NCBI GenBank assembly: GCA_037447605.1
Contig: CM074818.1
Coordinates: 248,001-312,000 of the forward strand
Origin: Zygnema circumcarinatum SAG 698-1b
Taxonomy: Eukaryota; Plantae; Zygnematophyceae
Direction: 5' to 3'
Length of the DNA: 64,000 nt
In this document: piece after piece, positions 24,966-63,423 of the stretch
How the letters are laid out: each line of letters starts with the position of its first letter
How positions within the stretch are numbered: the first letter of the stretch is position 1
Notes under the pieces: generated by a model
Told to the model about the DNA's origin: nothing
Seen by the model: only the letters and a program-made list of their open reading frames with translations
The model's database searches: none
Translations under genes and position numbers: made by a program

Positions 24966-34030
<9,065 letters not shown>

Positions 34031-35735: not shown

Positions 35736-36885
35736 GCGGCTAATCGGCTTGTTTTATTGCCGGCTTGTCGGCCGCCAGCTGCCGGCCGAGAGCAAAATGT
35801 GAACAGACAAAAGACCTGATCCGGAAGCAGCCCCTACCGTAGGGGCCCTACGGTACTGTACAGCTACTGGTCAACCGTCCGTGGTCAACGATGAGGGTCC
35901 TGTGAGTGACGTGGACTGGGTACGTGGCAAGTTTTTCTAGCGTGGTGAGCTGTGATTGGACCGATTGCCTTCAGAAGACCTCGACGGACTTTCGCCGAGA
36001 CATTTATCAGAACCGACAAAGCCCTTTCCACAAACCACTCACCACGCGCCACATATCAAATGATCGACGCCGTTCCGTGTGCGCCGGGCCCGGAGCTACC
36101 GAATCCAACCAGTCGCGACACAGAACCGTACGACAAGGGCCATTCGTCAAGATTATTGCAATGAATATTTACCAATGATGGCTCGCCACGTATGCAAAAA
36201 GGTAATGTGGCAAGTTCTTATTGGATTTTGGGCGAAGGGCGACAGTACATCCAACGGGATAGTCAGTCGCCGCACAGAGCTCCAGTCCGCCGGTTGGTCG
36301 CAATGGAAACCGTTTGGCTGCAGGTCAGGCGGAGGGAGAGGTGGCGTAGGGGGAGGGGGAGGGGGAGGGGGAGAGGGAGGGGGAGAGGGAGGGAGAGGGA
36401 GAGACGAAGTGGGAGGGGAAGAGGCTTGCCGGCGGAGAGGGAGCAGCCCGGCGGAGCAGGGCGAGAGAGAGAGAGGGAGAGAGAGGGAGAGAGAGAGAGG
36501 GGATATCGAGGGAGAGAGGGAGAGGGAGAGAGGGGAAAAGAGGAGGGAGAACGAGAGGAGGGAGAAAGAGAGGGGTGAGAGAGGAGGGAGACAAAGAGAG
36601 GAAGAGAGCGAGAGGATATCGAGGGAGAGAGCGAGAGAGGAGGGAGAGAGAGGGGAAAGAAGAGGGAGAAAGAGAGGAGGGAGAAAGAGGGGAGGCAGAT
36701 AGAGAGGGGGGAGAGAGGAGGGAGAGAGAGAAAGGGAGAGACACGGGAGGAAGAGAAAGGGTAGGACAGAGAAAGGAGGGGGCGAGGGAGAGAGGAGGGA
36801 GATAGACAGGGGAGGGTGAGCGAGAGGAGGGAGGGGTGCGGGAGAGAGAGAGAAGGGCGAGAGACGGGGGGTGGAGGAGGGCGGA

Positions 36886-39800
36886 ATGGCGGCGCTGCTG
36901 CTGCCGCTCCTTGTGCTGCTCTGCGGCGCCGCCATGGCGGCCGGCACGTGCCAGAAAGCAGTGGACCCTGCGGACGCGCAGGCGCTCCTTGACGTCAAAG
37001 CGGAGCTGGACGACCCTGATGGCGCCCTGGACACGTGGACGGCTGCCGATGCCTCCAACGCATGCTGCTGGACATTTGTCACGTGCAACTCCACACGTGT
37101 GTCTGACCTATATTTGGCGAATTTGGATCTCGGGGGCGCCCTCCCACAGGCTCTGGGAAACCTGACCAAGCTGAAGTACCTTCAACTTGACGGCAACGCC
37201 TTGGAGGGTCCCATACCCGCCACGTGGTCCGCCATGGCTAACCTCACCGACCTCCTCCTTTCGAACAACTTCCTGAACGGCTCCCTGAACATAGTGAGCA
37301 GCTTTCCCCTACTGAACTCTCTCCGAGTGAGAAACAACTCTTTCACTGGAGAGATAGGGAAGGTGCCCCTAGCGAACTTGACAGCCCTACAATACGTCGA
37401 CCTTGCCAGCAACGCCTTCACCGGCACGTTTCCGACATGGCTGGGAAACCTCCAGGCCCTCGGTTTTGTGGATATAAGCAACAATGATCTCTCCCCTTCG
37501 ACGCTTCCTTCTGCTGATTCATTCTGGCCCCCACTTCTCTATAATGTTTTATTTTCTGCCGTGAATTTGGTGGGCCCTATACCTGCCACTCTGTGCTCGA
37601 GACGAATTTACACTCTTGACCTAAGTTCGAACAATCTCAACGGCAGCATCCCTCAATGGACGGGAAACCAGTCGGAAGTAATTCTAAACTTCAGCAGAAA
37701 CAGTCTCACAGGCGTCTTACCAACTGCTGAAAAAGACTTTTCCTCCATAGACTTTTCGCACAACAAACTGAGCGGTAACATCACTGCATTCAGCGAGACG
37801 CTCTGCCGAAAGTACAGCATATCCAACGATAGTGGGCTGTACAACTTTGTGTTTTTTTTTCTGGACCTCAGCAACAACAAATTCAACGGGCCAATCCCCG
37901 GTGCGCTTGGCTCGTGCATGTATTTGGCAAATATTTTCTTGGGAAACAACAGCTTCAATGGCAGCGTTCCTGAAAGTCTTTTCAACAGTTCGCCTTCATT
38001 CGGCCGTGATCTTATCACATTGTGGGTGGCACTGCAACTTCCCTATTTGAGCTGCAGACTTTCCAATATCATTTTCGTCCGGAAGGCATTCAAAATATCC
38101 CTCGGCACTGCCTTGTTTTCGTGTGGGTCCTGAAGTAAATTTTCCCTCTCACTTGTTTGCAGGGACCTGAGCAACAATTCGATCACCAGTCTGCCTGAGC
38201 TTACGTTTGAATTCTCAGGTCTTACGAAATTGTAAGCCGGCCATCTACTTCATGACTTAGTTTATGTATAGTCGAAAATTACATTGTTGCGCATTCCAGT
38301 AATTAGCACACTCTATGTGTGAGAGGGAACATGGAAAGAGCGCATGATAGCTTTGTTACCTCTCGTCGTCATCTTGCATCCATCCATGTTTCGCAAGTGA
38401 GCCGGTTATTGAGGATGGCAGGAATCTGGAGGGAAATCAACTGACGAACGTACCTGTCTCGCTGTTCAATTTCACGGCTCTGGAGATCTTGTAAGGAACA
38501 TTCCGCCAAACTGACCCCTTCAGCGGGTGTGAAGTGAGACTCTGGTTTTTTTCTTCTGAAGTCTGTGTTAAGGCTGATGTTTCAGAAACTGAAAATCCAA
38601 AACTGACCAATGCTGTGACGCGCAACTCTATGTAGGAACCTTGCGAGGAACCGGCTGAGCAGCGTACCAGCTGTGATCGAGGAGTTGACTGTGCTCGAGG
38701 AACTGTGAGTGACTTGTGTAATGGCATAGAATGACATCTGGTCACATGAGGACATGAGGATTTGTGCATGCATGTGCATGCATGCGCTGTTCAGATCGAC
38801 TTGAACATGATCATCGGCGATGGGGCCTGATGGGGGTCATGCCGGGCCGCAGCTATCTGCAGGGCAACAACATCAGCGGCAGCGTGCCGGCCTTCGTGGG
38901 CAACATGTCGACCTTGACGACCATGTGAGCGCGAACCACAACCCTCCGACCCTCCAACTTCGGACCGTATCGGAATATATCGCTATACCGACTAGGCCCG
39001 TACTGACAGCAACTCTCACACCGTGACATGGCATGACATGGCAGTCCTGCTGGCAGGCTCTGACGTGGACATTTGTCGCTAGTGGTCGAGTCCAATAGCT
39101 AGTCACCCGACTGGCTAACACGTGACGTGACCCGTCCCAAATTTGCTCCATACTGTTCGTACTGTCCAAATAAAATGAAATAATGAGATGGGCTGTAAGA
39201 CGATTCGGGCCTCAATGGCGAGTTCGGCCAATGGGGATGTGCCACGTAAGCATCTGCTGAGTTGTTTCCGTACGAGGTCTTTAACATTGTTGACCGTGAA
39301 ATTTTTCATGCTCAGGAAAAATAATTTCCACTTGTGGAAACTAATAAAATCCAAGCTTTACCAATGAGGACTGGCCGCGTGGCATATTGTGCACGTGGTC
39401 TAACGGCATTGGTTAGCTTTGAATCGAGTTCGAAATGGAGAAAGTGAAACGATTATTGGCGTTGAACCAACGACGCCATTTTGATTGTAATTTTATTTTT
39501 CGTTAATTTCGTTTGATGGAATGACAACCGCACGTGTGAGTGCGGGGCACGTGTCAGTTAAATGGCGGCGGCAGTTCCATGTGACAAATGTGAGAAATTT
39601 TTTCTTGTGTCGTCGGATCGGACGGTCGCAGGGACTTCAGCGACAACTCCATCGACGGTCTGCCGGACTTCACCGAGTTCATGACTTCCGCGACAATACT
39701 GTGAGCGCCATCGCCTCCGCATGAACCACATCGCGTGCATGCCATGAACCACATGTTGTTCAACCACACATTGAACCATATCTCATGCGCAGTTCATGCA

Positions 39801-42791
39801 TGTCTGTGCATGTTTTCGCATTCATAGAGAACAGTGATCTTGAAATAACTTGCTTGCTGCTCTCATTGCAGGAAGGTGCGTGGAAATGAGCTCAGCAGCC
39901 TCCCTGCCTCCTTGTGCAACTTAACCCAACTTGAAATTTTGTGAGTTCTCTCAACCGCAGCATTGTTTTGGTATTCAATCTTGTTTAACTTCTTTGATTG
40001 TTTACCATCCAAGTTACATGTCAAGTTTGAAGTTGAAGTTGGAACGGACCGCACTTTGTCTCGCAGGGATGTGGGAGAGAACCAGCTCACAGCCGCAGCG
40101 ACTGCAATCGGAGAACTGACTTGGCTTCAAGAACTGTCAGTGCAGACCTCCTTCAAGTTTGACTTTTATTTCGTTTGAAGCAAATGGCTATGTTCTGATT
40201 TGGAGACATTCCATACGAGGCCATCCTCATAGGGTTCCCATTAAACTTATTGCAAAGTCTTCCTCGTTCAGAATTTGGAAAATGAGTTGCAGTTACTCAA
40301 CATTGCCGGACAACGTCAATGTATTGTTGCAGTAGGCATCTAAGTTGACACTTCGGTTTGAATGACTGCAGATATTTGGACAGTAATGCCATCAATGGGA
40401 GCATTCCGGCCTTCATCGGCAACATATCTTTCCTCCAAGTTTTGTAAGCTCAAAAATATCACTTCTTCATGTGAATGAACTGAATCCTCCGCTTTAAGTT
40501 CAGTGCAGAGTAAGGACTAAGTACACTTAACTTTTCATTTCGTCGGTGGATGTATAACAAATAGCCCTCCTCCTTTCTTAACCTTTGTACATTGAAGCCA
40601 CTTGCTATTCTTTTGCAGATATGCATCAGCTGACACGTTTGAAGTTTTTTTTTCTTTCGAATTTTGTATGTTATCTGCAGAGATCTCTCCAACAACTTCT
40701 TCACTGCAGAAATTCCGGACACGTTTGCTTCGAAAGAGTTCGGCTATGATGAAAGTCTGCAATTTTACAAATTCATCAGCTTCGTTGCTTTGAGATACAT
40801 GTAAGTCAATAGAAACCCCTTAGCACTTTGATTGATGTCCCTATTTGCGATACGCATATGGACAGCATCTTGAATTTTGAATCTCTCATAGTTTTGGCAT
40901 GTTTCTGTTTCTGTCAAACCAGGAACTTGAGCCGATGCAACCTCACAGGAAGCATTCCAGCGAATCTTGGAAACCTACAACGGCTTCTCACGCTGTATGG
41001 AGTCAGGCCTTAACGTCATCTGTAACTTTGTTCTTCATAACAAGCATGACTTGTCTATGAACTGCATGCAACAATATGATTTTGACGATATTGAAGGTCC
41101 TTACAAGGACTTAGAGCTGCTTTCTGCTTGTCAGGGACCTTTCAAGCAACCAACTGAGCGGAGAGATCCCTGACTTTCAGTACACCAGTCTTGCACACCT
41201 GTAAGTGTTAGAAGAAAATCTGTTTGCAGATCTGTATGCTGCAACTCATATGCGTAAAAACCATCAAACTTTTGCTTGATTATACGCATATTTAACATAT
41301 ACATATAATAATAAACAGTATTTTGTTTGTTTCCTTATCAAATTATGTCGCTTATATCGTTCAAGAAATGAGTTTTTAAATCGCAGGGACCTGTCTGCGA
41401 ACGCGCTGAATGGCTCTGTGCCCACTTCTCTGGCCAACCTCTCTCTCTCGCAGCTGTGAGTTCNNNNNNNNNNCTATTGCAGCTATCAGCCGGGCAATTC
41501 GGATCTCCAAATATCCTGCGTTAATGGTAACGTGATAAAATTTTATCAAAATGCGCTTAAAAAATCGAGCTGCATTTAAAACCAAAGTTTTTACATCATT
41601 TCATACCTGCTATTTTTGCGGTTGATTTTTTATCCGGACCTAACTTGCTGGACATGTTTTTGCTGTCTGTTTAGGTTATGCTGTGAATGACATTCCACCT
41701 CCACCTCCGTCTCCTTCTCCTCCCCCGCCTTCGAAAAGTGGTGGGCATTCTTTAACCTTTGGGCCTGCCGGATATTCGTTTGAGTTCATGATGAGGGTGA
41801 TCACGCTGTCCAAGAGCCATTGCAAGCAAGCCTTTCTCTGCTTACAGATTTATTTTTTCTCCCTCCCTCGTTTTCCTTCGGCAGGCCTTCCTGTGTACGT
41901 GATCGTTTGTATCACACTTGGAATCGTACTACTTGTTAGCATCGCCATTGTCTTGGCCTACCTTTACTTTCGCCCAAGTAATCAACTTCATTTTCTTCAA
42001 TGCTCTTCTTCTGTTCCTTACAAATCTGTTCAAAATCTGCATGAAGTTAAAGCAAAGAGAGCTAGGAAATACTTAATATACACCCTCGGAACCACATTCT
42101 CTCTTCGTCTTAATATTGGGATGCTTTTCCAGGAAAATCGGAGTTTGCGGTGAAGTTGAAGGACCATTTTGTAAAGCAAATTCGACTTCAGAACATCCGT
42201 GAAGCCACCGACAACTTCAGCGAGAAAAATCTTCTTGGAGTGGGCGGCTATGGAAGTGTCTACAAAGGCGTTACCAAAAGTGGAGAAATTTGGGCTGTAA
42301 AGAGAGCTAAAACTGTGTCAGTTGAAGGGCTACAGGTCTTTCAGAATGAGGTTTGTGCCAACTCATCCACTCATGATGTCAATAAATGTACCGTTTCTTC
42401 AGAGGAGTGTTCATCCCTTCATAGGAAAAACTGTTTGAAAAGCTTTTCTATTGGTCTCTTTAGAGATGTGTTCTAAGCAAAAAATGTTGTACAGATTGCG
42501 GAATCTGGACATTTATCATTTGCCAGATTCGGACCGGTTGCTAGTACTTAAGATTTTAAGTATTTTGGGGGTTCTCCGATGGTCTGTCATTTCAGCTCAC
42601 GTTGTTTCGAGCAAGTGATGAGATGGCAATGACCTGCTGACGTGCTTTTGTGCAGGTTGACGTCATTTCTCGAATGAACCACAAACATCTCGTGAAGCTT
42701 CTTGGCTTCTGTGACGAAGACAATGAGCAAATTTTGATTTATGAATTTGTTGAAAATGGCACATTGAAGTCGGCCCTTCAATTGAAAGATG
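36886..42791 (+). CDS. LRR receptor-like kinase 1 (partial; kinase C-lobe lost at the 100-N gap 42942-43041)
   Basis: Signal peptide, LRR N-cap (CCWTFVTC) and many plant LRRs in one 1136-nt exon (36886-38021). Then ~13 small phase-2 LRR exons, a Pro-rich stalk, a TM exon (~41885) and kinase exons ([30 protein letters not shown]). Confidence 0.9.
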
Positions 42792-43539
42792 GTAGGGCCT
42801 CCATCTTGGCAGATGCATCCCAGAAAGCTATTTTTTGGTTCCATGCTAGCTTGTGAAATTTCTTGAGGCCGACAAAACACGCACACTTGATCGTTTTAGT
42901 CTCTATGGGTCGTCGATGCGCATATTTGAATTTAGCACCTTNNNNNNNNNNNNNNNNNNNNNNNNNNNNNNNNNNNNNNNNNNNNNNNNNNNNNNNNNNN
43001 NNNNNNNNNNNNNNNNNNNNNNNNNNNNNNNNNNNNNNNNNTCCGCCTCAAAGGGCCGATTTTTTCGAAGGAAAGCTGCTGCTGGCTTTGTGGAAATGTA
43101 CACCGAAGGCTTGCTCTCTCACTACTTCCCATCAGTCATGTCCCTTGCCATGGCGGACAGAGCTACCTATACACCTACTGCTGTCTACTCCATAAGTCTG
43201 CCGCCAAAATGGTAGTAATGGTCAAATAATTTACTGTCCAATGTTCTGCACACATCCCAAACCACATTCTCACTGTTAAGACGGACCAATACTGATGCTT
43301 AATCAAACATAAGGAGGGCAGGCGAAAAAAGACCGTATCCAAAGGCACCAGAACGCAGAACACATACAACTCTGAGGTAAATATAAGACAGATGGAGACT
43401 ATCAAATATGACGTGGAAGATGGTCTGGTGACCGGGGTCAGACAGTGGGCGAAGAGGTTATCGAGGTTTCGAAGGAGGGCCCGCGGGAGGGGTACGCCCG
43501 CCAACGCGTGAGGCCCTCTCAGAGAGAGAGGGAGAGAGA

Positions 43540-43697
<158 letters not shown>

Positions 43698-43846
43698 CCG
43701 TGTGTGCTTGATGGCAAATAGATCAGTTTGAACTTTGACGTGAGCATTGCCATATTTTGGTTTATTCTCTCGTCCTCTTTTCTTCCCCCAATCTCTCACC
43801 TCTCACACACACACACTCACTTTAACCTCCCTTTGTCTTTTGCAGA

Positions 43847-49991: not shown

Positions 49992-50376
49992 CGAAGCGCG
50001 CGCGTCTACAAGGTATAAGGGCGCAACACGTGGGGCGACATGATTGGTCGCGGCAACATATGACGTGGCAAGTATGTTTGGGACCGTGACGTGACGAAAC
50101 GAGACGCGAAAAAAGTGGAGTCCGCGGACGGCAGTCGGAAATGGCGGGAATTAAAACTGACAGAAAAAGATAGGGCACATAACGTAGCGTGTTTCAGGAA
50201 AAATCTGTCAGTTTTAATTCCCGCCATTTCCGACTGCCGTCCGCGGACTCCACTTTTGTCGCGTCTCGTTTCGTCACGTCACGGTCCCAAACATAGTTGC
50301 CACGTCATATGTTGCCGTCACCAATCATGTCGCTCCACGTGTTGCGCCCTTATACCTTGTAGACGCGCGCGCTTCG
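49992..50376. repeat. Near-perfect ~385-bp hairpin (arms ~170 bp), MITE-like
   Basis: cgaagcgcgcgcgtctacaagg...aaaactgacaga is mirrored by tctgtcagtttt...ccttgtagacgcgcgcgcttcg. Confidence 0.9.
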
Positions 50377-50477: not shown

Positions 50478-53400
50478 ATGGCGCGAGCGCCGTCTCTCTC
50501 TCTCGTGGTGGCGGTCCTCCTCTTTGCCGGCGCCGCCGCCCCGTGCGAAGCCGCCGCTGCGGACATCCACCCAGGAGACAGTGAGCCGCCGCGGCCCGCC
50601 CGCCCGCCCTCTATGGAAGGGGAGATGCGGACGTGGCATCTGTTGTGCTTTTTGAAGCGGACCGTGGCCTCAATCCAATCCTGCATCTGCTTGCGCTTGG
50701 GCGCAGGGAACACACTTCTCGCTGCCAAAGCGGCATTCAACAACGCACAAAATCTCACCTCCTGGACAGCGAGAAACCACAACTGCAGCAACTGGAGTGG
50801 GATCACATGCGACGCAAGCGGGCGCGTTTCTGAGCTGTGAGCTCCACTTTGACTGAACACAGCTTGAGATTTCTGAACTGCAGCCCGAGATGATGACCAT
50901 GATGATGCCAGTGATAGAAATGCTAGTCGAGGCAGCATGTTTATTCAGTTCCTATTTTTTTTTTTTTTTTGGCAGAAACTTGCATGATAATTCCCTCTCG
51001 GGGTCGATCCCTGATTCTATCGGCAACCTTTCGAATCTGAACTACTTGTAAGTATTTTTCCCCTTAAACCTGAAATGAGAGGGATAGAAATGTCAGACAG
51101 AGGAATGCCAGTGATAGAAATGCTAGTCGTGGCAGCATGTTTATTCAGTGGCCTTTTTTTTATTTTTGGCAGAGACTTGTCTCAGAATTTCCTAACAGGG
51201 TCTATCCCGGATTCTATCGGCAACCTTACGAATCTGCAGTCATTGTAAGCAGTTTTCCCCATAAATCTGAAATAAAAATGATAGAGATGCCAGACAGAGG
51301 AATGTCAGTGATAGAAATGCTAGTCTTTGCGGCATGTCTATTTAGTCCTATTTTCATTATTTTTGGCAGATGGTTGGCTCAAAATTCCTTATCTGGGTCT
51401 ATCCCGGATTCAATTGGCAACCTTAAGAATCTACAATCATTGTAAGTATTTTCCCCCATAAATTTATAATGAAAGTGAAATAAATATCACACAGAGGAAT
51501 GACAGTGATAGAAATTCTAGTCGTCGCAAAATGTTTATTTAGTTTTGATGTTTTTATTTTTGGCAGAGACTTGGATTATAATTCCCTAACGGGGTCTATC
51601 CCAGATTCTATTGGCAACCTTACAAATCTGCAAACATTGTAAGTATTTTTCATTGCAATCTGAACTGAAAGAGATAGAGATGCCAGATAGAAGACTGCCG
51701 GTGATAAATGTTAGTCGTGGCAGCATTTTTGTTTAGTGCCTATTTTTTTCTATTTTTGGCAGAGACTTGTCTCAGAATTCTTTAACAGGGTCGATCCCGG
51801 ATTCTATCGGCAACCTTTCGAATCTGCGAACATTGTAAGTATTATTCTCCATAAATGTGACCTGTAAGAGATAGAAATGCCAGATAGAGAAATGCCAGTG
51901 ATTGAAATGTTAATCGTGGCAGCATGTTTATTAAATGCCTACGTTTTTTATTTTTGGCAGATGGTTGTATTCTAATTCCCTAACGGGGTCTATCCCGGAT
52001 TCTATCGGCAACCTTACAAATCTGCTCTCATTGTAAGTAATTTCCCCCATAAATATGACCTGTAAGAGACAGAAATTCCAGACAGAAAAACGAAAGTGAT
52101 AAAAATGCTAGTCGTGGCAGCATGTTTATTAAGTGCCTATGTTTTGCTATTTTTGGCAGATGGTTGTATTCTAATTCCCTAACGGGGTCTATCCCGGATT
52201 CCATCGGTAACCTTTCGAATCTGTACGCATTGTAAGTAGTTTTCCTCAAAGATCCGAAATGTAAAAGACAGAAATGTCAGACAGAGGAATGCCAGTGATA
52301 GAAATACTAGTCGTGGCAGCATGTTTATGCAGTGCCTTTTTTTTAATTTTTGGCAGATCCCTGTATTCAGTCCTATTTTCTTTATTTTTGGCAGATGGTT
52401 GTCTCAAAATTCCCTAACGGGGTCCATCCCGCATTCTATCGGCAACCTTGCGAATCTACTAAGACTGTAAGTATTTTTCATCATGAATCTGGAATGTAAG
52501 AGATAGAAATGCCAGAGAGGGGAATGGCAGTGATAGAAATGCTAGTCGTGGCAGCATGTTTACTTAATGCCTTCTTTTTTATTTTTGGCAGAGACTTGTC
52601 TACTAATTTCCTAACGGGGTCTATCCCGGTTTCTATCGGTAACCTTGCAAGTCTATATTACTTGTAAGTAGTTTTCCCCATAAATCTGAAATGAAAGAGA
52701 TAGAAATGCCAGACCGAGAAATGCCAGTGATAGAAATGCTAGTCGTGGCAGCATGTTTAATGAGAGCTTATTTTTTATAATTTTGACAGATCTCTGTATT
52801 CTAATTTCCTAACGGGGTCTATTCCGGATTCTATCGGCAACCTTGCGAATCTGCAATACTTGTAAGTATTTTTCGCATACATTTGAAATGAGAGGGATAA
52901 AAATGGCAGACAAAGGAATGCAAGCGATAGAAATGCTAGTCGTGGCAGCATGTTTAATGAGTGCCTATTCTTTTATTTTTGTCAGAGGCTTGACAGGTAA
53001 TTCCCTAACGGGGTCTATCCCGGATTCTATCGGCAACCTTGCGAATCTGCAAGAATTGTAAGTATTTTTCCCCATAAATCTGAAATGAAAGAGATAGAAA
53101 TGTCAGACAGAGGAATGCCAGTGATAGAAATGCTAGTCGTGGCAGCATGTTCATTCACTGTCTTTACTAAGTCTATTTTTTGTATTTTTGGCAGATACTT
53201 GTCTAGTAATTCCCTAACGGGGTCTGTCCCGGATTCTATCGGCAATCTTACGAATCTGGTGTACTTGTAAGTATTTTCCCCCATACTTCTGAATTGAAAG
53301 AGATAGAAATGCCAGACAGAGAAATGCAAGTGATAGAAGTGCTAGTCGTGACAGCATGCTCATGTGTTGCCTTTTTTTTATTTTTGGCAGAGACTGGTCT

Positions 53401-56400
53401 TCTAATTCTCTAAGGGGGTCTATCCCGGATTCTTTTGGCAACCTTACGAATCTGCAAACATTGTGAGTATTTTTCCCCATAAATTTATAGTGTAAAAGAT
53501 AGAAATGCCAGACAAAAGAATGCCAGTGATAGAAATGCTAGTCGTGGCCGCATGTTATGGCAGCATTTCGTGGCAGCATGTCAATTCAGTGCCTTTTTTT
53601 ATTTACTTGTTTGTAGGGACCTGAGCAACAATTCGATGACAAGTATGCCTGAGNNNNNNNNNNGAAAATTTTGTAAGGAACATTCCGCCAAGCTGACCCC
53701 TTCAGCGGGTGTGAAGTGAGACTCTGGTTTTTTTCTTCTGAAGTCTGTGTGTTAAGGCTGATGTTCCAGAAACTGAAAATCCAAAACTGACCAATGCTGT
53801 GACGCGCAATTCTATGTAGGAACCTTGCGAGGAACCGGTTGAGCAGCGTACCAGCTGTGATCGAGGAGTTGACTGTGCTCGAGGAACTGTGAGTGACTTG
53901 TGTAATGGCATAGAATGACATCTGGTCACATGAGGACATGAGGATTTGTGCATGCATGTGCATTCATGCGTTGTTCACATCGACTTGAACATCACCATCA
54001 GCGATGGGGCCTGATGGGGGTCATGCCGGGCCGCAGCTATCTGCAGAGCAACAACATCAGCGGCAGCGTGCCGGCCTTCGTGGGCAACATGTCGACCTTA
54101 ACGACCATGTGAGCTCCAACCCGACCACTCCAAGCCTCCGACATTGGACCGTATCGGAACGAGTTGGCGTTGACCTAACGACGCAATCAAATTATTATTT
54201 TTTTTTCAATCGATTTCGTTTGATGAAGAGATACCGCACGTGTGATTGTGCTGCACGTGTCAGTAAACGGCGGCGACAATTCTGTGTAACAAATGTGAGA
54301 AATTCTTCTTGTGTCGTCGGATCGGACGGTCGCAGGGACTTCAGCGACAACTCTATCGACGGTCTGCCGGACTTCACCAAGTTCATGACGTCCGTGACAA
54401 TACTGTAAGCGCCATCCCCTCCGCATGAGCCACATCGCGGGGATGCCATGAACCACATGTTGTTCAACAACACATTGAGCCATATCTCATGCACAATTCA
54501 TGCGTGTCTGTGCATGTATTGGCATTCTTAGAGAACAGTGATCTTGAAATAACTTGCTTGCTGCTCTCATTGCAGGAAGGTGCGTGGAAATGAGCTCAGC
54601 AGCCTCCCTGCTTCCTTGTGCAACTTAACCCAACTTGAAATTTTGTGAGTTCTCTCAACCGCAGCATTGTTTTGGTATTCAATCTTGTTTAACTTGTTAG
54701 TTTGTTTACCATCCAAGTTACATGTCAAGTTTGAAGTTGAAGTTAGAACGGACCGCACTTTGTCTCGCAGGGATGTGGGAGAGAACCAGCTCACAGCCGC
54801 AGCGACTGCAATCGGAGAACTGACCTGGCTTCGAGAAATGTTAGTGCAAGCCACCTACAAGTTTACCTTTTATTTCGTTTGCNNNNNNNNNNATTTTTTG
54901 TATTTTTGGCAGATACTTGTCTAGTAATTCCCTAACGGGGTCTGTCCCGGATTCTATCGGCAATCTTACGAATCTGGTGTACTTGTAAGTATTTTCCCCC
55001 ATACTTCTGAATTGAAAGAGATAGAAATGCCAGACAGAGAAATGCAAGTGATAGAAGTGCTAGTCGTGACAGCATGCTCATGTGTTGCCTTTTTTTTATT
55101 TTTGGCAGAGACTGGTCTTCTAATTCTCTAAGGGGGTCTATCCCGGATTCTTTTGGCAACCTTACGAATCTGCAAACATTGTGAGTATTTTTCCCCATAA
55201 ATTTATAGTGTAAAAGATAGAAATGCCAGACAAAAGAATGCCAGTGATAGAAATGCTAGTCGTGGCCGCATGTTATGGCAGCATTTCGTGGCAGCATGTC
55301 AATTCAGTGCCTTTTTTTATTTACTTGTTTGTAGGGACCTGAGCAACAATTCGATCACGAGTTTGCCTGAGCTCACGATTGAATTCTCACATCTTACGAC
55401 AATGTAAGTCGGCCATCCACTTCATGACGTAGTTTTATGAATAGTCGAAAATATCATTGTTGCGCATTCCAGTAATTAGCACACTCTATGTGTGAGAGGG
55501 AACATGGAAAGAGCGCATGATAGCTTTGTTACCTCTCGTCGTCATCTTGCATCCATCCATGTTTCGCAAGTGAGACGGTTATTAAGGATGGCAGGAATTT
55601 GGAGGGAAATCAACTGACGAACGTACCTGTCTCGCTGTTCAATTTCACGGCTCTGGAGATCTTGTAAGGAACATTCCGCCAAACTGACCCCTTCAGCGGG
55701 TGTGAAGTGAGACTCTGGTTTTTTTCTTCTGAAGTCTGTGTGTTAAGGCTGATGTTCCAGAAACTGAAAATCCAAAACTGACCAATGCTGTGACGCGCAA
55801 TTCTATGTAGGAACCTTGCGAGGAACCGGTTGAGCAGCGTACCAGCTGTGATCGAGGAGTTGACTGTGCTCGAGGAACTGTGAGTGACTTGTGTAATGGC
55901 ATAGAATGACATCTGGTCACATGAGGACATGAGGATTTGTGCATGCATGTGCATTCATGCGTTGTTCACATCGACTTGAACATCACCATCAGCGATGGGG
56001 CCTGATGGGGGGTCATGCCGGGCCGCAGCTATCTGCAGAGCAACAACATCAGCGGCAGCGTGCCGGCCTTCGTGGGCAACATGTCGACCTTAACGACCAT
56101 GTGAGCTCCAACCCGACCACTCCAAGCCTCCGACATTGGACCGTATCGGAACGAGTTGGCGTTGACCTAACGACGCAATCAAATTATTATTTTTTTTTCA
56201 ATCGATTTCGTTTGATGAAGAGATACCGCACGTGTGATTGTGCTGCACGTGTCAGTAAACGGCGGCGACAATTCTGTGTAACAAATGTGAGAAATTCTTC
56301 TTGTGTCGTCGGATCGGACGGTCGCAGGGACTTCAGCGACAACTCTATCGACGGTCTGCCGGACTTCACCAAGTTCATGACGTCCGTGACAATACTGTAA

Positions 56401-59400
56401 GCGCCATCCCCTCCGCATGAGCCACATCGCGGGGATGCCATGAACCACATGTTGTTCAACAACACATTGAGCCATATCTCATGCACAATTCATGCGTGTC
56501 TGTGCATGTATTGGCATTCTTAGAGAACAGTGATCTTGAAATAACTTGCTTGCTGCTCTCATTGCAGGAAGGTGCGTGGAAATGAGCTCAGCAGCCTCCC
56601 TGCTTCCTTGTGCAACTTAACCCAACTTGAAATTTTGTGAGTTCTCTCAACCGCAGCATTGTTTTGGTATTCAATCTTGTTTAACTTGTTAGTTTGTTTA
56701 CCATCCAAGTTACATGTCAAGTTTGAAGTTGAAGTTAGAACGGACCGCACTTTGTCTCGCAGGGATGTGGGAGAGAACCAGCTCACAGCCGCAGCGACTG
56801 CAATCGGAGAACTGACCTGGCTTCGAGAAATGTTAGTGCAAGCCACCTACAAGTTTACCTTTTATTTCGTTTGCAGCAAATGGCTATGTCTTGCCTTGGA
56901 TTCATTCCATACGAGGCCATCCTCATAGTGTTAGCATTAAACTTATTGAAAAGTATTCCTCGTTTAGAAAGGGAAAATTGAGTTGCAGTTACTCAATATT
57001 GGCGGAAAACGACAATGTCTTGTTACAGTAGGTGTAACAAGCCTTGAGCACAACACCCAAAGCCTGCTAGAGACTAAGTCACTTAAATGTAATGCTGGTT
57101 TCTGGAACGATTGCAAGTGCCCCCTTCCGGACCCCCTCTTGCATTCATCCCACGCCCCTTATACGCTCCCCCCGTCGAACCCTTTACCAGCGTAAGGGAC
57201 CGACAGGGCTAGCCAATGGCGCTTATGCCACGTACAATCGCTGGTCCAATGCCGCTGTGGCGAGGGCCGGTCACGCGTCACCAACATTCCCACGTGTGAC
57301 GCGGACATCGCCACTCCGTGATAGCGACCGGCGGTCGTGGTCGCGCTCATCCTCGAACGCGACGCCGCCGACGCCAAGAGAATCGCCGCTGTCCGTACTG
57401 TCCGTACGGGCGGTACGGATCCGTACGGCTACACCGTACGACTGTACGGATGGCCCGTACGGCCAAACCGTACGGAGATCCTCAGGATGCCGGCGGCACC
57501 GTGGTGTCTGTAGCGTTCAGTTCGCTACAGTAGGCGTCTAAGTTGACACTTTGGTTTGAATGACTGCAGATATTTGGACAGCAATGCCATTACTGGGAGC
57601 ATTCCGGCCTTCATTGGCAACATATCTTTCCTCCAAGTTTTGTAAGCTCAAAAAATATCTCTACTTCATGTGAATAAACTGAATCCTCCGCTTTAAGTTC
57701 AGTGCAGCGTAAGGACTAAGTACATTTTACTTTTCATTTCGTCGTTGCATGTATAACAAGTAGCCCTCCTTTTCTAGCCCTTGGACATTGAAGCCACTTG
57801 CTATTCTTTTGCAGATATGCATCTGCTCACACGTTTGAAGTCTTTTTTTCTTTCTTTTTTGCATGCTATCTGTAGAGATCTGTAACAAACCCGCCTCCAG
57901 CAGGGTTCGAACTCAAGACCTCCCGGTATTCACCTAAGTGCTTTACCATTAAAAGGCAACCGCGGATGTAAGTACTAGGTCATACACTCAATGTATACCG
58001 TTCGTTACATTCCTCCCCACCTAAACCGTGCTCGTCCTCGAGCACCATGCTCAAGGGTTTTCACGAGCGCGTTCAAGCTCCTTCATCACATGGACCTACA
58101 GACTTGGCTGCTCCAGCTCAACCAATCTGTACCATGCTCAGAGATCACGGTGTTTTTAGGGTGGATTGCAAATACTAGTCCTTAGGCTCTGATACCAATG
58201 TAACAAACCCGCCTCCAGCAAGGTTCGAACTCAGGACCTCCCGGTATTCACCTAAGTGCTTTACCATTAAAGGGCAACCGCGGATGTAAGTACTAGGTCA
58301 TACACTCAATGTATACCGTTCGTTACAGATCTCTCCAACAACTTCTTCACTGCAGAAATTCCGGACACGTTTGCTTCGAAAGAGTTCGGTTATGATGAAA
58401 GTCTGCAATTTTACAAATTCATCAGCTTCCTTGCTCTGAGTTACATGTAAGTCACTAGAAACCGCTTAGCACTTCAATGTCTCTATTTGCGACACGCATA
58501 TGGACGGCATCTTGAATTTTGAATCTCATATAGTTTTGGCATGTTTCTATTTCTGTCAAACCAGGAACTTGAGCCGATGCAACCTCACAGGAAGCATTCC
58601 ATCGAATCTTGGAAACTTACAACGTCTTCTCACGTTGTATGGACACAGGCCTTAACGTCTTCTGTAACTTTGTTCGTCATAACAAGCATGACTTGTCTAT
58701 TAAGTTCATGCAACAATATGATTTTCACTATATTGAAGGTCCTCACAAGGACTTGGAGCTGTTTGTGCATCGCAGGGACCTTTCAAGCAACCAACTGAGC
58801 GGAGAGATCCCAGACTTTCAGTACACCAGTCTTGCACACCTGTAAGTGTTAGAAGGAATCTGCTGCAATTCATATGTATAAAAACCATCAAACTGCTTGA
58901 ATATACGCATATTTAACACATACACATAGAAATAAACAGTATTTTATAACTTCTTCATCAAACCCTGTCGCTTATACTGTTTAAGAAACGAGTTTTTAAA
59001 TCGCAGGGACCTGTCTGCGAACGCGCTGAATGGCTCTGTGCCCACTTCTCTGGCCAACCTCTCTCTCTCGCAACTGTGAATTCGGAACAGATACGCCGCA
59101 ATTCACAGTTCCATGCTCTCTCATCATCCGTGGGATGAGCGACGTTATTCTTTCCAGCCTTGACTAATTTTCTCATTTTCCCGCCTCATGGTTGGGACCT
59201 CTCACTCTCTCTCTCTGTCACTCTTCCTCGCTTTTTCTCTGTCTCTCTCGCCCTTCTTTCAATTGCAGCGACTTGAGAGGCAATAAACTTTCAGGTTTTC
59301 TTCCAGCTTTCAACAAAACGCTATTACTGTGTGAAAAGTACGTGTTCCATCCTGGGCGATTCTTCTGCTCTTAGGCGCTTTCCTTGTCAACGTGTGCTGC

Positions 59401-62184
59401 TTTCATGTTCCTTTCTGACAGCATCATGCACTTTTCTATTGCAGCTATCGGCCGAGCAATTCGGATCTCCAAATATCCTGCGTTAATGGTAACCTAAAAA
59501 AACCGAGTTGCGTCTAGAACCAATGTTCTTACATCATTTAAGACTGCTATTTTTATTTAAGAGAAATTTTATGTATTCATTTTATTCTGACCCTACTTAT
59601 TGGACATCATTTTTCTGCCTGTTTAGGTTATGCTGTGAATGACGTTCCACCTCCTCCTCCGTCTCCTCCTCCGTCTCCTTCTCCTCCCCCGCCTTTGAAA
59701 AATGGTGGGAATTCTTTAAGCTTTGGGCCAGCCGGATATTCGTTTGAGTTCATGATGAGGGTGATCAGGCTGTCCAAGAACCATTGCTAGCGTGCCTTTC
59801 TCTGCTTTCAAATTCATTTTTTCTCTCTCCCTCTTTTTCCTTCTGCACGCCTTCCTGTATACGCTATCGTTTGTATCACACTTGGAATCGTACTACTTAT
59901 TGGCATCGCCATTGTCTTGGCCTACCTTTACTTTCGCCCAAGTAATCAACTTATTTTTCTTAAATTTTCTTCTTCCGTTCCTTACAAATCTGTTCAAAAT
60001 CTGCATGTTTACAGCAAAGGGCAAGGAAATACTTAATGTATACCCTCGAAACCAGAGGGTTTGCTTTATATGGAAAATGTGAAGGTATGGTAACATGAAG
60101 TTGCTGACGGATGGAGCCACCAATTTGCTCACCAATATCACCCTCGTCACTAAATTCTCTCTTCGTCTTAATGAAGACTTCGTCTTGGGATGCTTTTGCA
60201 GAAAAATCAGAGTTTGCGGTGAAGTTGAAGGACCATTTTGTAAAGCAAATTCGACTTCAGAACATCCGTGAAGCTACCGACAACTTCAGCGAGAAAAATC
60301 TTCTTGGAGAGGGTGGCTATGGAAGTGTCTACAAAGGTGTTACCAAAAGTGGAGAAATTTGGGCTGTAAAGAGAGCTAAAACTGTGTCAGTTGAAGGGCT
60401 ACAGGTCTTTCAGAATGATGTTTGTGCCAACTCATCCACTCATGATGTCGATAAATGTACCGTTTCTTCACAGGGGTGTTCATTCCTTCATAGTACAAAC
60501 AGTCTGAAAAGATTTTCTATTGTTCTCTTTAGAGAAGTGGGCTAAGCAGAAAATGTTGTACGGATTGCGGAATCTGGATATTTATCATTTGCCAGATTCA
60601 GACGTGTTGCTGGTACTTAAGACTTTAAGGGGTTTTAGGGTCCTCCGATGGTGTGTCATTTCAGCTCACGTGGTTTCGAGCAAGTGATAAGATGGCAATG
60701 ACCTGCTGACGTGCTTTTGTGCAGGTTGACGTCATTTCTCGAATGAACCACAAACATCTAGTGAAGCTTCTTGGCTTCTGTGACGAAGACAATGAGCAAA
60801 TTCTGATTTATGAATTTGTGGAAAATGGCACATTAAATTCGGCCCTTCGATTGAATGGTGGTAGGGCCTCCATCTTGGCAGATGCATCCCAGAAAGCTAT
60901 TTTTTGGTCCTATGCTAGCATGTGAAATTTCATGAGGGCTATAAAACACACACACACTTGACTGTTTTAGGTTCTATTGGTCGTAGATGCGCATATTTGA
61001 ATTTTGCACCTTCAGCGTAGTCACATTTTTTCGTGGGTTTTGTGTCCTTATAGGAGGACGAACCCCGCTAACATTCAAGCAGCGTCTGGAGATTGCGTTG
61101 GGTTTGGCCGAAGGCTTGGCTTATCTCCACACGCAGGCGAAGCCCACAATTATCCATCGCGACGTTAAGTCGGACAACATTCTTTTGGATGCCCGATTGC
61201 AAGTATGAGATGGCATTGATTTGGGTTAGGGGGAAGGAGGAGGTCAAGGGGGGAGGGAGGGGGGGAAAGGCAGGGAGGGAAGGAGGGAGAGGGAGTGAAG
61301 GCGGGCGGGGAGAGGACTGGATTGGGAGAAAGGAGGTGGAGATACCATCCGAGCGTTTCCCATTTTTACGTCTTGAACTGTTCGTTTGCTTCTTCTGCAG
61401 GCGAAAGTTTCTGATTTTGGCCTTCTGAAAGATAACGAGGAGGAGAGCGCTTCGTCTTCTAGGACGCGAGTTGCAGGAACGCATGGATACATGGATCCCG
61501 AGTACTACACCACTTTCAAAGTCACTCCAAAGAGCGACGTCTATAGGTAAAAGCAATGCTTACCCATAAAGTGAAGTTCTTGCAAAAACCGAGAATTTTT
61601 TTTCAAAAGTGATTTCCTCGTTCTTGACTTAATTAGGCCTAGGATCACATTGCAATAAGATAATCGGATAATCTTGGATCTTCCATGCATAGCGACAAGG
61701 TGGCTATTCCCCATTGGTTGTTGAATGTGAGATGTAAGCGATGCAAGTCTTTGTGTCTCATCATGTGAGCTCACTGAAGAATTCCCATTGCACCCAAACA
61801 AGACGAACTATGTCTTTAAACTGATGCACACGTGGTGGAAAACTTGCGCAGCTTTGGGGTCGTCATTCTTGAGCTCATCACTGGCCAGCCAGCGGTGATC
61901 ACTCAAACTGACGGGGAGGCCGGACCGACCTCATTAGCAGGCTGGGTATGGGCTCCATACTGCACATCCCTTACAGTCATGAAAACTATGATGATGGCAT
62001 GAAGAGGTTATGTTCATGATCTAGTCATGATGCGGTTTTACAAAAACGCTAAACCGGTATTCTTGATTTTAAAGTTGCTATACTAAGCCAATTGGCACAT
62101 AATGATGTTCAGTATACACTTGTTCAAAGATGAGATTGTTTGGAGCTTACGATGATAAAATCATGCTGTTGACAGTTATTTGAG

Positions 62185-62218
<34 letters not shown>

Positions 62219-62554
62219 CAGGCCCTGCAGCGCATCCGAAGCCTGGGCATCCTGGGCCTCGCTGCAATCACTGACCGCAACCTGGACGGAAACTTCTCGC
62301 TAGACGACATGCAGACCTTTGCGAGCATTGCCGCTTCCTGCCTTCAAAAGGTTTCCGCGTATCGACCGGAAATGGCCGACGTTGCGAGTCAGCTGCGAAT
62401 GCTCAAGGCAAAGGTGGACGGCATTCAAGTTCCCGTTCAACCACCCATTCAGCCTGAGGAGCACGTAGAAGTCACCATACCATCCGATTATTTCAGAAAC
62501 CAGAGCAATACTACATCAATGGTGCAGGAGCAAAGTGTTGTGATTGCAAGGTAG
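50478..62554 (+). CDS. LRR receptor-like kinase 2 (RD kinase) with a tandem LRR-exon array; carries lesions and may be a pseudogene
   Basis: Signal peptide exon 50478-50580; N-cap exon 50707-50836 (CSNWSGITC); 13 x 72-nt LRR exons; module shared with RLK1; TM exon 59849-59941; kinase [39 protein letters not shown]; stop at 62554. Confidence 0.88.
50976..53462 (+). repeat. Tandem array of 13 LRR exon-intron units (~197-bp period)
   Basis: 72-nt exons start at 50976, 51173, 51370, 51567, 51763, 51961, 52160, 52395, 52592, 52790, 52986, 53195 and 53391. Consensus [24 protein letters not shown]; introns alignable. Confidence 0.95.
54893..56874 (+). repeat. Near-identical duplicate of ~53172-54882 next to assembly gaps
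   Basis: Repeats the last two array exons and the following shared LRR exons with only a few differences; bounded by a 10-N gap at 54883-54892. Confidence 0.85.
57033..57529. mobile_element. Solo LTR (497 bp) in an RLK2 intron
   Basis: TGTAACA...GCTACA termini, 5-bp TSD GTAGG (57028-57032 and 57530-57534), absent from the paralogous RLK1 intron (~40330). Confidence 0.85.
57881..58327 (-). mobile_element. TRIM (447 bp) with tRNA-like Pol III promoter in its LTRs (Helenus/TRIMp3-like)
   Basis: 129-bp LTRs at 57881-58009 and 58199-58327 (3 mismatches), TGT...ACA ends. On the minus strand, PBS TGGTATCAGAGC (tRNA-iMet type) and PPT GGTGGGGAGGAA. GATC duplicated at the flanks; empty site in RLK1 at 40681. 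Confidence 0.92.
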
Positions 62555-62836: not shown

Positions 62837-63423
62837 CAGTAGGACCCCGTCATATTTTCCACCTACATTTGGCAAAAATCGGGCGAAAATATTGTATTTG
62901 GCAAATATAAGGTCCGTGTTACCAATAGGCGAGCGGAATTATGTTAGAGTTCATGTGTGTCCGTACGTATCGTATCTCATCATATCGTATCGTTTTCTGT
63001 CATATCGCACCGCATCGTACCGTATCGTATCGTGGCTAACCGCATACAGTACATGAAGCACGCCTTAGCGTTTACTGAGGCAGCAAACCAAAAAGCTTCG
63101 ACCCCGTAACGGCTACTACAACTCGTACGGCTAGTACGGGTAGTACCGTATCGTGCCGTATCGTGTCGTATCGAAGCCAAAAAGAAGTGGAGAAGAGCGA
63201 GCGCCTCTTACGGCGGCACGTGCGGGGAGAATAGGTGAGTTTTGCGTAAGCCCGTGACGGCTAGTACAGCTAGTACGGTAAGTACGGTAAGTACGGTTGG
63301 TACGGTTAGTACAAATAGTACGAATAACACAAGTTACCGTACAAAAAGGTGGTTTCGGCAAAATCGGGGCGAATTTCTTGGGGACGCACTTTTGATGGTG
63401 GAAAATATGACGGGGTCCTACTG
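62837..63423. mobile_element. Tc1/mariner-type MITE, copy B
   Basis: Perfect 27-bp TIR CAGTAGGACCCCGTCATATTTTCCACC, TA TSD on both sides, no ORF. Confidence 0.88.

Follow-up and report, generated by a model that had tools for sequence, protein, structure and literature searches.

The LRR receptor kinases of land plants typified by ERECTA and SERK belong to the same family as the algal gene described here and share its LRR consensus; in ERECTA-type genes each LRR is encoded by one 72-nt exon, and the introns between these exons are old and unrelated to one another. The tomato Cf-2 gene carries near-identical LRR blocks, with internal LRR duplication and a variable solvent-exposed face, and no introns interrupt the LRR region of the Cf genes.

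Outside the plants, the ROCO (LRR-ROC-COR) genes of Ectocarpus and brown algae place one LRR in each 72-nt, phase-2 symmetric exon (Zambounis et al., 2012, PMC3341825; Teng et al., 2024, PMC11378527). These exons have been amplified in tandem, the concave face is under positive selection, inactivated LRR exon remnants lie in the introns, and the products are candidate recognition receptors (PMC3341825; PMC11378527). In Tetrahymena, uniform exon-intron LRR units with phase-2 introns have undergone a massive, lineage-specific expansion by unequal crossing-over, giving a rapidly evolving family that is partly fused to kinases. Fungal NLRs with high internal conservation (het-e/het-d WD40, ANK and TPR repeats) contain tandem repeats that are ~80–100% identical within a gene, in which a few hypervariable binding-surface positions are under diversifying selection and repeats are gained, lost and shuffled by unequal recombination (PMC12222747; PMC4986451). 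The lamprey VLRs, too, owe their diversity to LRR modules in which the framework is constant and the concave-face residues vary.

Likenesses to each of these systems are seen in an array of LRR exons from the streptophyte alga Zygnema circumcarinatum SAG 698-1b, which lies in a window of 64,000 nucleotides (assembly GCA_037447605.1, contig CM074818.1, positions 248,001 to 312,000; coordinates below are those of the window). The array exemplifies a form of receptor diversification over evolutionary time that has precedents in brown algae, ciliates and fungi, and it involves no new principle. Our literature search, incomplete in its coverage, found no description of exon-plus-intron LRR arrays in streptophyte algae or land-plant RLKs, in agreement with the original prediction from this DNA, which knew of no precedent in a streptophyte RLK.

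That prediction had also drawn a parallel with LRR exon shuffling in Ectocarpus, and the parallel has been borne out both in the 72-nt phase-2 exons and in the excess of change on the concave face. The gene is nevertheless not a ROCO and only works alike: it has no ROC-COR GTPase output domain, its output being a transmembrane kinase. One thus compares an intracellular GTPase-coupled protein of a stramenopile, with another class of LRR and no LRRNT cap, with an extracellular RLK of a streptophyte. Alternative splicing of LRR exons has been reported in the brown alga (PMC11378527), whereas none is seen here among the joints listed, and the introns of the Zygnema array are still ~80% alike. The Tetrahymena exons measure 90 bp, so that exon and repeat boundaries do not correspond as they do here, and they belong to another LRR type in a ciliate with a germline and a somatic nucleus. 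High internal conservation of the fungal kind is found in Zygnema, with exons 79% and introns 81% identical and variability confined to six of 24 positions; the fungal repeats, however, are intronless, adopt the WD40, ANK or TPR fold and serve intracellular receptors, and their number has been demonstrated to vary between strains (PMC12222747; PMC4986451), whereas the Zygnema array comes from one assembly. The lamprey germline gene is incomplete and is completed somatically by copying flanking cassettes, while the Zygnema gene is complete in the germline, is interrupted by ordinary introns and has its exons joined in genomic order; the earlier comparison with VLR cassettes accordingly survives as a functional analogy and no further.

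Architecture of the receptor kinase gene

In our gene model the gene runs on the forward strand from an ATG at 50478 to a stop codon at 62551. Its first exon (50478–50580) supplies the start codon and a hydrophobic signal peptide, recognized by eye, and its second (50707–50836), which ends in phase 2, an LRRNT_2 cap, the plant LRR N-terminal domain (Pfam PF08263, E=6.8e-08). Downstream of the array, the modelled proximal ectodomain (55335–59337) comprises ~13 further LRRs, one per phase-2 exon; these exons are of 66–72 nt, with one of 120 nt, their introns are unrelated, and many of the LRRs have 23 residues and are without GxIP. A transmembrane helix is predicted, by eye, at approximately 59857–59934, and is followed by a protein kinase domain in six exons, with C-terminal tail and stop (60204–62551), in which the GxGxxG, VAxK, HRD and DFG (SDFG) motifs are found and four exon pieces give Pkinase or PK_Tyr_Ser-Thr matches in Pfam. 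A signal peptide with LRRNT_2 cap, 24-residue LRRs and a single transmembrane helix joined to a Ser/Thr kinase are the marks of a plant-type LRR-RLK, and all 13 repeats of the array fit the plant-specific consensus LxxLxxLxLxxNxLxGxIPxxLGx. In an expressed receptor kinase of this type, the array would then probably make up the distal half of the ectodomain. Searched against protein representatives, the last kinase exon (110 aa) gave weak matches only, at no more than 38% identity, and the gene product is therefore absent from the set searched.

A TRIM-like element (57881–58327, forward strand), missing in the tandem paralog described below, is inserted 6 nt into exon 22, where it destroys both acceptor and frame; dropping this 120-nt exon would keep the frame. 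Because exon 22 is broken in this way, the gene may be losing function.

The array of single-LRR exons

Tandem Repeats Finder delimits the array at 50905–53556 (forward strand), as 13.2 copies of a 197-bp unit, in which a 72-nt LRR exon stands between the 3' portion of the preceding intron and the 5' portion of the following one. Motif counts within it reached 14 for the intron core and 15 for the exon framework, where shuffled sequence leads one to expect 0. The 13 exons (50976–53462) start at 50976, 51173, 51370, 51567, 51763, 51961, 52160, 52395, 52592, 52790, 52986, 53195 and 53391; all are open, and each has an AG acceptor, a GT donor and phase-2 boundaries, and the codon split at these boundaries is that of the Leu at LRR position 7. 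This is the set of 13 exons that had been predicted, and independent translation reproduced the residues listed for their starts and ends exactly; the claim that the intron interrupts the β-strand is likewise upheld by the position of the split codon. The description of the introns as "near-identical", on the other hand, was an overstatement, since pairwise identity is ~80–81% for introns (range 70–93%) and 79% for exons.

Introns 7 (163 nt) and 11 (137 nt) are longer than the others of the array. Behind a spare acceptor in intron 7 one reads a short stretch, ATCCCTGTATTC (52357–52368, forward strand), that matches the start of exon 10 at 11 of 12 bases, and which we take to be a vestigial exon stub, the remnant of a deleted 14th unit. 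Intron 13 (53463–53616, forward strand), whose removal is seen in the RNA junction 53462>53617, is array-type almost throughout, contains a 13-mer in triplicate and has roughly its last 12 nt before the acceptor in common with the paralog. An RNA gene in the array introns was also considered; there was no Rfam match, the consensus intron fold was weak (-9 kcal/mol) with almost no covariation, and an RNA function of the intron core was rejected on these grounds.

The count of 13 needs to be read with the state of the assembly in mind. A block at 53176–54882 is 99.4–99.75% identical to 54894–56874, with one 10-N gap inside it (53654–53663) and another directly after it (54883–54892), and units 12–13 recur at 54894–55272 within this 1.7-kb, gap-flanked duplication. 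The block duplicated at the 3' end of the array is single copy in the paralog, and the redundancy is probably an assembly artefact, for which reason the copy number is valid for this assembly only. One might go further and suppose that the array itself, or its copy number, is a product of misassembly in a repeat-rich region, given that the 10-N gaps and the redundant block start inside the array and that the window contains six gaps. We regard this as extremely improbable. The units differ by ~20%, and each is hence uniquely assemblable; contigs of DNA run X7 show 0 differences over exon-intron-exon stretches at 51219–51605, 51798–51976 and 53231–53527; and the adjacencies 6>7, 8>9, 12>13 and 13>14 are confirmed by RNA contigs.

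Selection within the array

The introns provide a neutral clock inside the gene, against which the selection acting on the ligand-face residues can be gauged directly at this one locus. The intron distance between units (Jukes-Cantor) is 0.235, and the third positions of the framework codons, at 0.20, do not differ from it (Mann-Whitney p=0.67). The framework codons as a whole have a dN of 0.049 and a dS of 0.32, and the framework xLxxNxLxGSIPxSIGNLxxL is held constant by strong purifying selection. Variation is concentrated at LRR positions 5, 6, 8, 10 and 11, the x of LxxLxLxxN, and at position 2. At these x codons the distance for codon positions 1 and 2 is 1.06, which is 4.5 times that of the introns (bootstrap 3.1–6.5; Mann-Whitney p=4e-7), and the ligand-face codons are near saturation. 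Their dN is 1.05, as compared with the intron distance and the framework dS given above, in an excess measured from pairwise distances between the 13 repeats of one gene; their dS of 0.59 is imprecise, because there are only six x codons in 13 repeats. Diversifying selection has driven these six positions, five of them on the concave face and the sixth position 2, apart, and it has built in the array a new, non-repetitive predicted binding surface. The array shows a predicted receptor binding surface in the course of its construction. A conserved framework with a hypervariable ligand face is what had been foreseen, as was a non-synonymous excess at the x positions, here found pairwise; the five positions named in the original prediction are indeed variable, and position 2, which it did not list, must be added to them.

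Origin and turnover of the units

The array is best read as the product, first, of unequal recombination that amplified the exon in the germline and, then, of diversifying selection, and to this explanation as a whole, including the place of the array in an expressed receptor kinase, we assign a probability of about 0.75. One exon-plus-intron unit would have been amplified in tandem in the germline, most likely by unequal crossing-over or replication slippage between the 197-bp units. Every unit being a 72-nt exon between phase-2 introns, the reading frame survives the addition or removal of any of them, so that the frame neutrality of gain, loss and exchange claimed for these symmetric exons is confirmed. 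Diversifying selection on the ligand-face codons and purifying selection on the framework would then have followed, and the diversification would be evolutionary, arising between repeats, between paralogs and probably between strains, and not within an individual. Evidence of turnover is seen in the exon stub with its spare acceptor (52357–52368), in the triplicated 13-mer of intron 13, and in the incompatibility of 51% of informative site pairs, for which a PHI-like test is marginal (p=0.04).

These incompatible sites, and the PHI result, may also be read as the trace of concerted evolution, in which 13 ancient LRRs have had their introns and framework homogenized by gene conversion or unequal exchange, while selection rejected the conversion tracts that would erase ligand-face differences. 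The x codons would then record a true, old divergence, and the rest of the array would merely look young. The intron distances fit such a history in being star-like, every intron lying nearest to intron 11 with no trend with separation along the array, as does the want of correlation between intron and x-codon distances (Spearman -0.2; Mantel-type intron-exon correlations nil), and the same mechanism has been proposed for the high-internal-conservation repeats of fungal NLRs (PMC12222747). The x blocks, however, sit between the conserved splice-proximal ends of the introns and the framework, and conversion tracts would have had to avoid 6–12 nt repeatedly; a max-chi-square scan of the array for mosaics was significant for unit 8 only, an alignment effect of the vestigial-exon rearrangement; and the third positions of the framework are no more homogenized than the introns. 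We therefore consider concerted evolution of an ancient array unlikely. The star-like intron distances, the absent intron/x correlation and the weak PHI signal do not by themselves separate amplification from an old, homogenized array.

Paralog A and a probable exchange of heads

A tandem LRR receptor kinase paralog, paralog A, lies at 36886–42941 on the forward strand. Its intronless head exon (36886–38021) encodes a signal peptide, an LRRNT_2 cap and ~11 LRRs, and in homology searches found land-plant RLP and RLK proteins at 25–34% identity, with no close relative. From 38151 on, it contains the same proximal LRR-TM-kinase module as the array gene, at ~90–95% nucleotide identity, and the introns common to the two genes are 92.7% identical, as against ~80% between array units. 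Homology between the genes starts at 55323, 12 nt before exon 14; upstream of this point paralog A has its intronless LRR head instead. Because paralog A shares the proximal module only, the array appears to be a swapped-in head, and the shift within intron 13 from array-type sequence to sequence shared with paralog A would mark the breakpoint. On this comparison of the two genes, recombination within the intron, ~12 nt before the exon 14 acceptor, would have fused the whole array to an older proximal LRR-TM-kinase module. Two tandem paralogs that differ by an exchange of heads at a single intron would offer a concrete instance of exon shuffling as a source of new receptor architectures.

Expression and splicing

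The locus is transcribed and canonically spliced, as the original prediction required. The GT..AG joints in RNA contigs are 50580>50707, which is present in the RNA-like runs X1–X3, 52032>52160, 53266>53391 and 53462>53617, and exons 8 and 9 are joined in one further contig. In runs X1–X3 the depth of the intron bins is zero, and depth in run X2 is flat, at ~19–35, across unique exons. All 13 exons are spliced constitutively and in order, as shown for five junctions. Non-canonical "joints" in the RNA contigs carry replacement letters, and represent paralogous transcripts. Exon-skipping isoforms had been envisaged; among the joints listed from the three RNA-like runs none is seen, each GT..AG joint linking neighbour to neighbour. 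These are Logan contigs, which drop rare variants, and rare skipping isoforms could be hidden for that reason.

On the model of the Ectocarpus ROCO proposal and of the lamprey VLR reality, one may also think of such a locus as an active combinatorial system, in which symmetric exons would be alternatively spliced, or somatically recombined with a genome-wide cassette pool, to yield many receptor surfaces per individual or clone. Every exon is frame-neutral, the genome seems to contain hundreds of related cassettes, Ectocarpus ROCOs are reported to splice LRR exons of this sort alternatively (PMC11378527), and a full-length protein could be produced only by leaving out the broken exon 22. Yet the joints listed all connect adjacent exons, and the depth across unique exons is even. 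Dscam-like mutual exclusion is contradicted by the joining of consecutive array exons (6>7, 8>9, 12>13>14), and VLR-like somatic cassette assembly by a germline gene that is complete from ATG to kinase and spliceable as it stands, unlike the VLR locus. We accordingly find an active system of this kind quite improbable, and the "diversification system" of the original prediction is retained in its evolutionary sense only, there being no sign so far of somatic or splicing-based shuffling.

Related cassettes elsewhere in the genome

Evolutionary amplification, our preferred reading, appears to extend well beyond this locus. Run X7, from which 582 contigs were placed, shows depth spikes of 22,890 and 27,613 over a base of ~60–80, and RNA contigs are found with the same framework and other x blocks. 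Such word depth in DNA and RNA indicates that there are many related cassettes elsewhere in the genome, and the array would be one member of a genome-wide cassette family; the depth spikes and paralogous transcripts make the phenomenon appear genome-wide in Z. circumcarinatum SAG 698-1b. Should this be so, plant-type receptor kinases would have been able to draw on LRR-exon cassette amplification in the algae related to land plants, with a bearing on the origin of the large LRR-RLK and RLP repertoires of plants. That the alga keeps a genome-wide pool of hundreds of homogenized LRR exon-intron cassettes, and that within clonal lineages its receptor genes swap these among themselves or select from them through splicing or somatic recombination, is a conjecture to which we give little credence; if true, the pool would endow a close algal relative of the land plants with a combinatorial repertoire of surface receptors, and would be a streptophyte counterpart of the brown-algal proposal of Zambounis et al. 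In metagenomes, neither the intron core, sought by exact match, nor a 14-letter protein motif, sought in degenerate form, yielded related loci. The DNA runs X8–X16 contain 8–51% of the sampled words.

The exon array and its host gene

An array of 13 interchangeable LRR exons had been the original prediction, and this is indeed what is found: the interval 50976-53462 contains 13 exons, all precisely 72 nt long, with AG on the 5' side and GT(A/G)AG(T/C) on the 3' side, and an open reading frame is continuous across all of them. Every array intron is in phase 2, such that a Leu codon is assembled from the last two bases of one exon and the first base of the next, and the product of each exon is a plant-specific 24-residue LRR of the form x-L-x-x-N-x-L-x-G-S-I-P-x-S-I-G-N-L-x-N-L-x-x-(L). 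The predicted start and end residues of the exons match the translation exactly. The five x of LxxLxLxxN are variable, as had been claimed, and to these must be added position 2 (T/A/S/K), which was missing from that list. The array introns measure 124–127 nt, apart from introns 7 and 11, which are 163 and 137 nt long, and Tandem Repeats Finder returns a single array at 50905-53556 with a period of 197 and 13.2 copies. A 27-nt intron core motif occurs 14 times and a 30-nt framework motif 15 times, counts that take in a second, probably redundant copy of units 12 and 13, as compared with zero in shuffled sequences.

The gene that houses this array is, by its predicted domain order, an LRR receptor-like kinase. 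The start codon (50478) is followed by a hydrophobic signal peptide, an LRRNT_2 cap in exon 2 (50707-50836; Pfam E=6.8e-08), the 13 array LRRs, ~13 further LRRs, a Pro-rich stretch, a predicted transmembrane helix near 59857-59934, and a kinase domain in six exons with SDFG among its motifs; the stop codon lies at 62551. The ~13 LRRs that follow the array are also encoded one per phase-2 exon, with unrelated introns, and many of them are 23-residue repeats lacking GxIP.

A block of ~1.7 kb at the 3' end of the array, spanning exons 12–20, is present twice, with 10-N gaps (53654-53663 and 54883-54892) at the junctions. The sequence at 53176-53653 equals that at 54894-55371 (99.4%), all three mismatches falling at the contig end beside the gap, and 53668-54882 equals 55659-56874 (99.75%). 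A true in-frame duplication of these exons is possible. Because the block is single in the tandem upstream paralog (36886-42941), and because of the flanking gaps and the near-identity, the first copy was treated as redundant, and it is probably an assembly redundancy; the gene model was accordingly built through the second copy, 54894-56874. Contigs of the DNA run X7, which may derive from the assembled sample, bear out several exon-intron-exon stretches with zero differences.

Rates of change and selection

The array introns themselves served as an internal neutral standard for rates. Compared pairwise, these introns differ by 0.20 on average (JC distance 0.235), and the third codon positions of the LRR framework, with a JC distance of 0.20, are no different (Mann-Whitney p=0.67). 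Framework codons have a dS of 0.32 and a dN of 0.049. For the x codons (LRR positions 2, 5, 6, 8, 10, and 11), the mean pairwise difference at codon positions 1 and 2 is 0.57 (JC distance 1.06) and dN is 1.05, which places their rate at 4.5 times that of the introns (bootstrap 95% interval 3.1–6.5; per-column Mann-Whitney p=4e-7). Since relaxed constraint alone reaches at most the intron rate, selection for difference is needed at the x codons. Positions 5, 6, 8, 10, and 11, the x of LxxLxLxxN, we take from established LRR structures to be solvent-exposed residues of the concave β-sheet.

One part of the intron is itself conserved. A core of ~30 nt, GTGATAGAAATGCTAGTCGTGGCAGCATG, found at 51110-51140 and at the corresponding position of every array intron, shows a per-column diversity of ~0.1, as opposed to 0.25–0.38 in the most variable intron parts, a conservation about as strong as that of the coding framework. 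This core found no match in Rfam, and fold analysis gave no convincing conserved structure for it; it may be a branch point or splicing signal. In intron 13, a 13-mer of the core, GTGGCAGCATGT, is triplicated (53541-53583).

Transcripts and the cassette family

Intron bins are absent from the RNA-like sequencing runs X1–X3, save for two retained-intron contigs. GT..AG joints in these runs mark the removal of the gene's first intron (50580>50707) and of array introns 6, 12, and 13 (52032>52160, 53266>53391, and 53462>53617), exon 8 is joined directly to exon 9 in one RNA contig, and X2 word depth is even across unique exons, at ~19–35. The proposal of a receptor-diversification system holds in its evolutionary sense; as an active system it is unsupported, no exon-skipping GT..AG joint appearing among those listed for X1–X3. 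Many non-canonical RNA "joints" are also seen, with 11–31 replacement letters placed exactly at the x blocks, and these are transcripts of paralogs that have the same framework sequence with other x codons.

Such paralogous transcripts, together with depth spikes in X7, point to a cassette family of perhaps hundreds of members. The 582 X7 contigs placed on the sequence reach depths of 22,890 and 27,613 in bins over intron 1 and the exon 11/intron 11 boundary, as compared with ~60–80 for unique sequence, a ratio that is only a rough guide to number. The array gene probably belongs to a large family of algal receptors. Metagenome scans turned up no related DNA.

History of the array

Distances among the introns are star-like, with intron 11, the copy closest to the consensus, being nearest to every other, and they do not rise with separation along the array. 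Incompatibility affects half of the informative pairs of sites, and the outcome of a PHI-like test is marginal (p=0.04); a pairwise max-chi-square scan gives significant mosaics at unit 8 only, a signal that arises from a rearrangement in intron 7. Here, an entire intron runs up to a spare acceptor (to 52356); next come the 12 nt of an exon stub, ATCCCTGTATTC (52357-52368), joined to the 3' end of another intron. Of these 12 bases, 11 agree with the beginning of exon 10, and the stub is the scar left by a deleted 14th unit. The spare 3' splice site before it is a potential cryptic acceptor.

Exons 6 and 7 are identical over their first 41 nt and differ at 9 of the remaining 31, a pattern suggestive of a hybrid unit, and one that selection on the 3' x block could equally produce. 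Overall, units appear to be gained and lost by unequal recombination. The present similarity of the units may go back to a single amplification burst or to homogenisation that still continues.

A probable head swap between tandem paralogs

The paralog at 38151-42941 and the array gene at 55323-61012 share ~90–95% identity, introns included, the introns common to both being 92.7% identical. Homology starts 12 nt upstream of the exon 14 acceptor of the array gene. Ahead of this point, one 1.1-kb exon uninterrupted by introns (36886-38021) supplies the paralog with its signal peptide, LRRNT_2, and ~11 LRRs, whereas in the array gene exon 1, the cap, and the 13 array exons take that place; the heads are unrelated and the proximal LRR-TM-kinase module is common. 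In a protein search, the paralog head finds its best relatives among the RLP and RLK proteins of land plants, at an identity of only 25–34%, which is in keeping with plant-type receptors in an organism that is not itself a land plant. The pair appears to be a clear example of domains exchanged at an intron.

The array units are approximately three times more diverged from one another than are the paralogs in their shared introns, which suggests that the array had already expanded before joining the proximal module, although this relative dating could be skewed if gene conversion has acted between the paralogs. Intronic recombination would then have joined a pre-expanded array to the LRR-TM-kinase module.

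The principle is already known from other lineages. Brown-algal ROCO genes encode one LRR per 72-nt phase-2 exon and feature exon shuffling, concave-face positive selection, and inactivated LRR exons within introns (PMC3341825, PMC11378527); anatomy and logic are alike here, while lineage and output domain differ. In Tetrahymena, 90-bp LRR exons with phase-2 introns number in the tens of thousands and have spread through unequal crossing-over (PMC6564038), and the high-internal-conservation repeats of fungal NLRs are near-identical, carry hypervariable surface sites, and are shuffled (PMC12222747). The statement that no description of such a system was known for a streptophyte RLK agrees with our search of the literature on streptophyte algae and plant RLKs, which found no description of such LRR exon arrays. 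The present array is a textbook-clean example, with its neutral control built in and its head swap traceable.

Insertions and simple repeats around the two genes

In the array gene, exon 22 (DLSNNFF...) is interrupted after 6 nt by a TRIM-like element (57881-58327) whose terminal repeats are tRNA-like, and the target site AGATC(T) is duplicated; the paralog is empty at the corresponding 40681-40686. If the original acceptor is used, two codons are followed by a stop, the acceptor at the end of the element is off by 2 nt, and the frame is kept only by skipping of the whole 120-nt exon. A long, near-perfect inverted repeat with arms of ~150 nt each (50040-50180 versus 50215-50360) directly precedes the 5' end of the gene; it resembles a MITE or hairpin element placed in the promoter region. 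Short GTACGG/CCGTAC-type repeats (…ccgtacgg…) cluster in an intron at 57380-57470 and downstream of the gene at 62960-63330. Extended purine-rich microsatellites, (GGGAGA)n and (CT/GA)n, occupy 36330-36880, 29480-29650, and 43520-43700, one of them just ahead of the start codon of the paralog.
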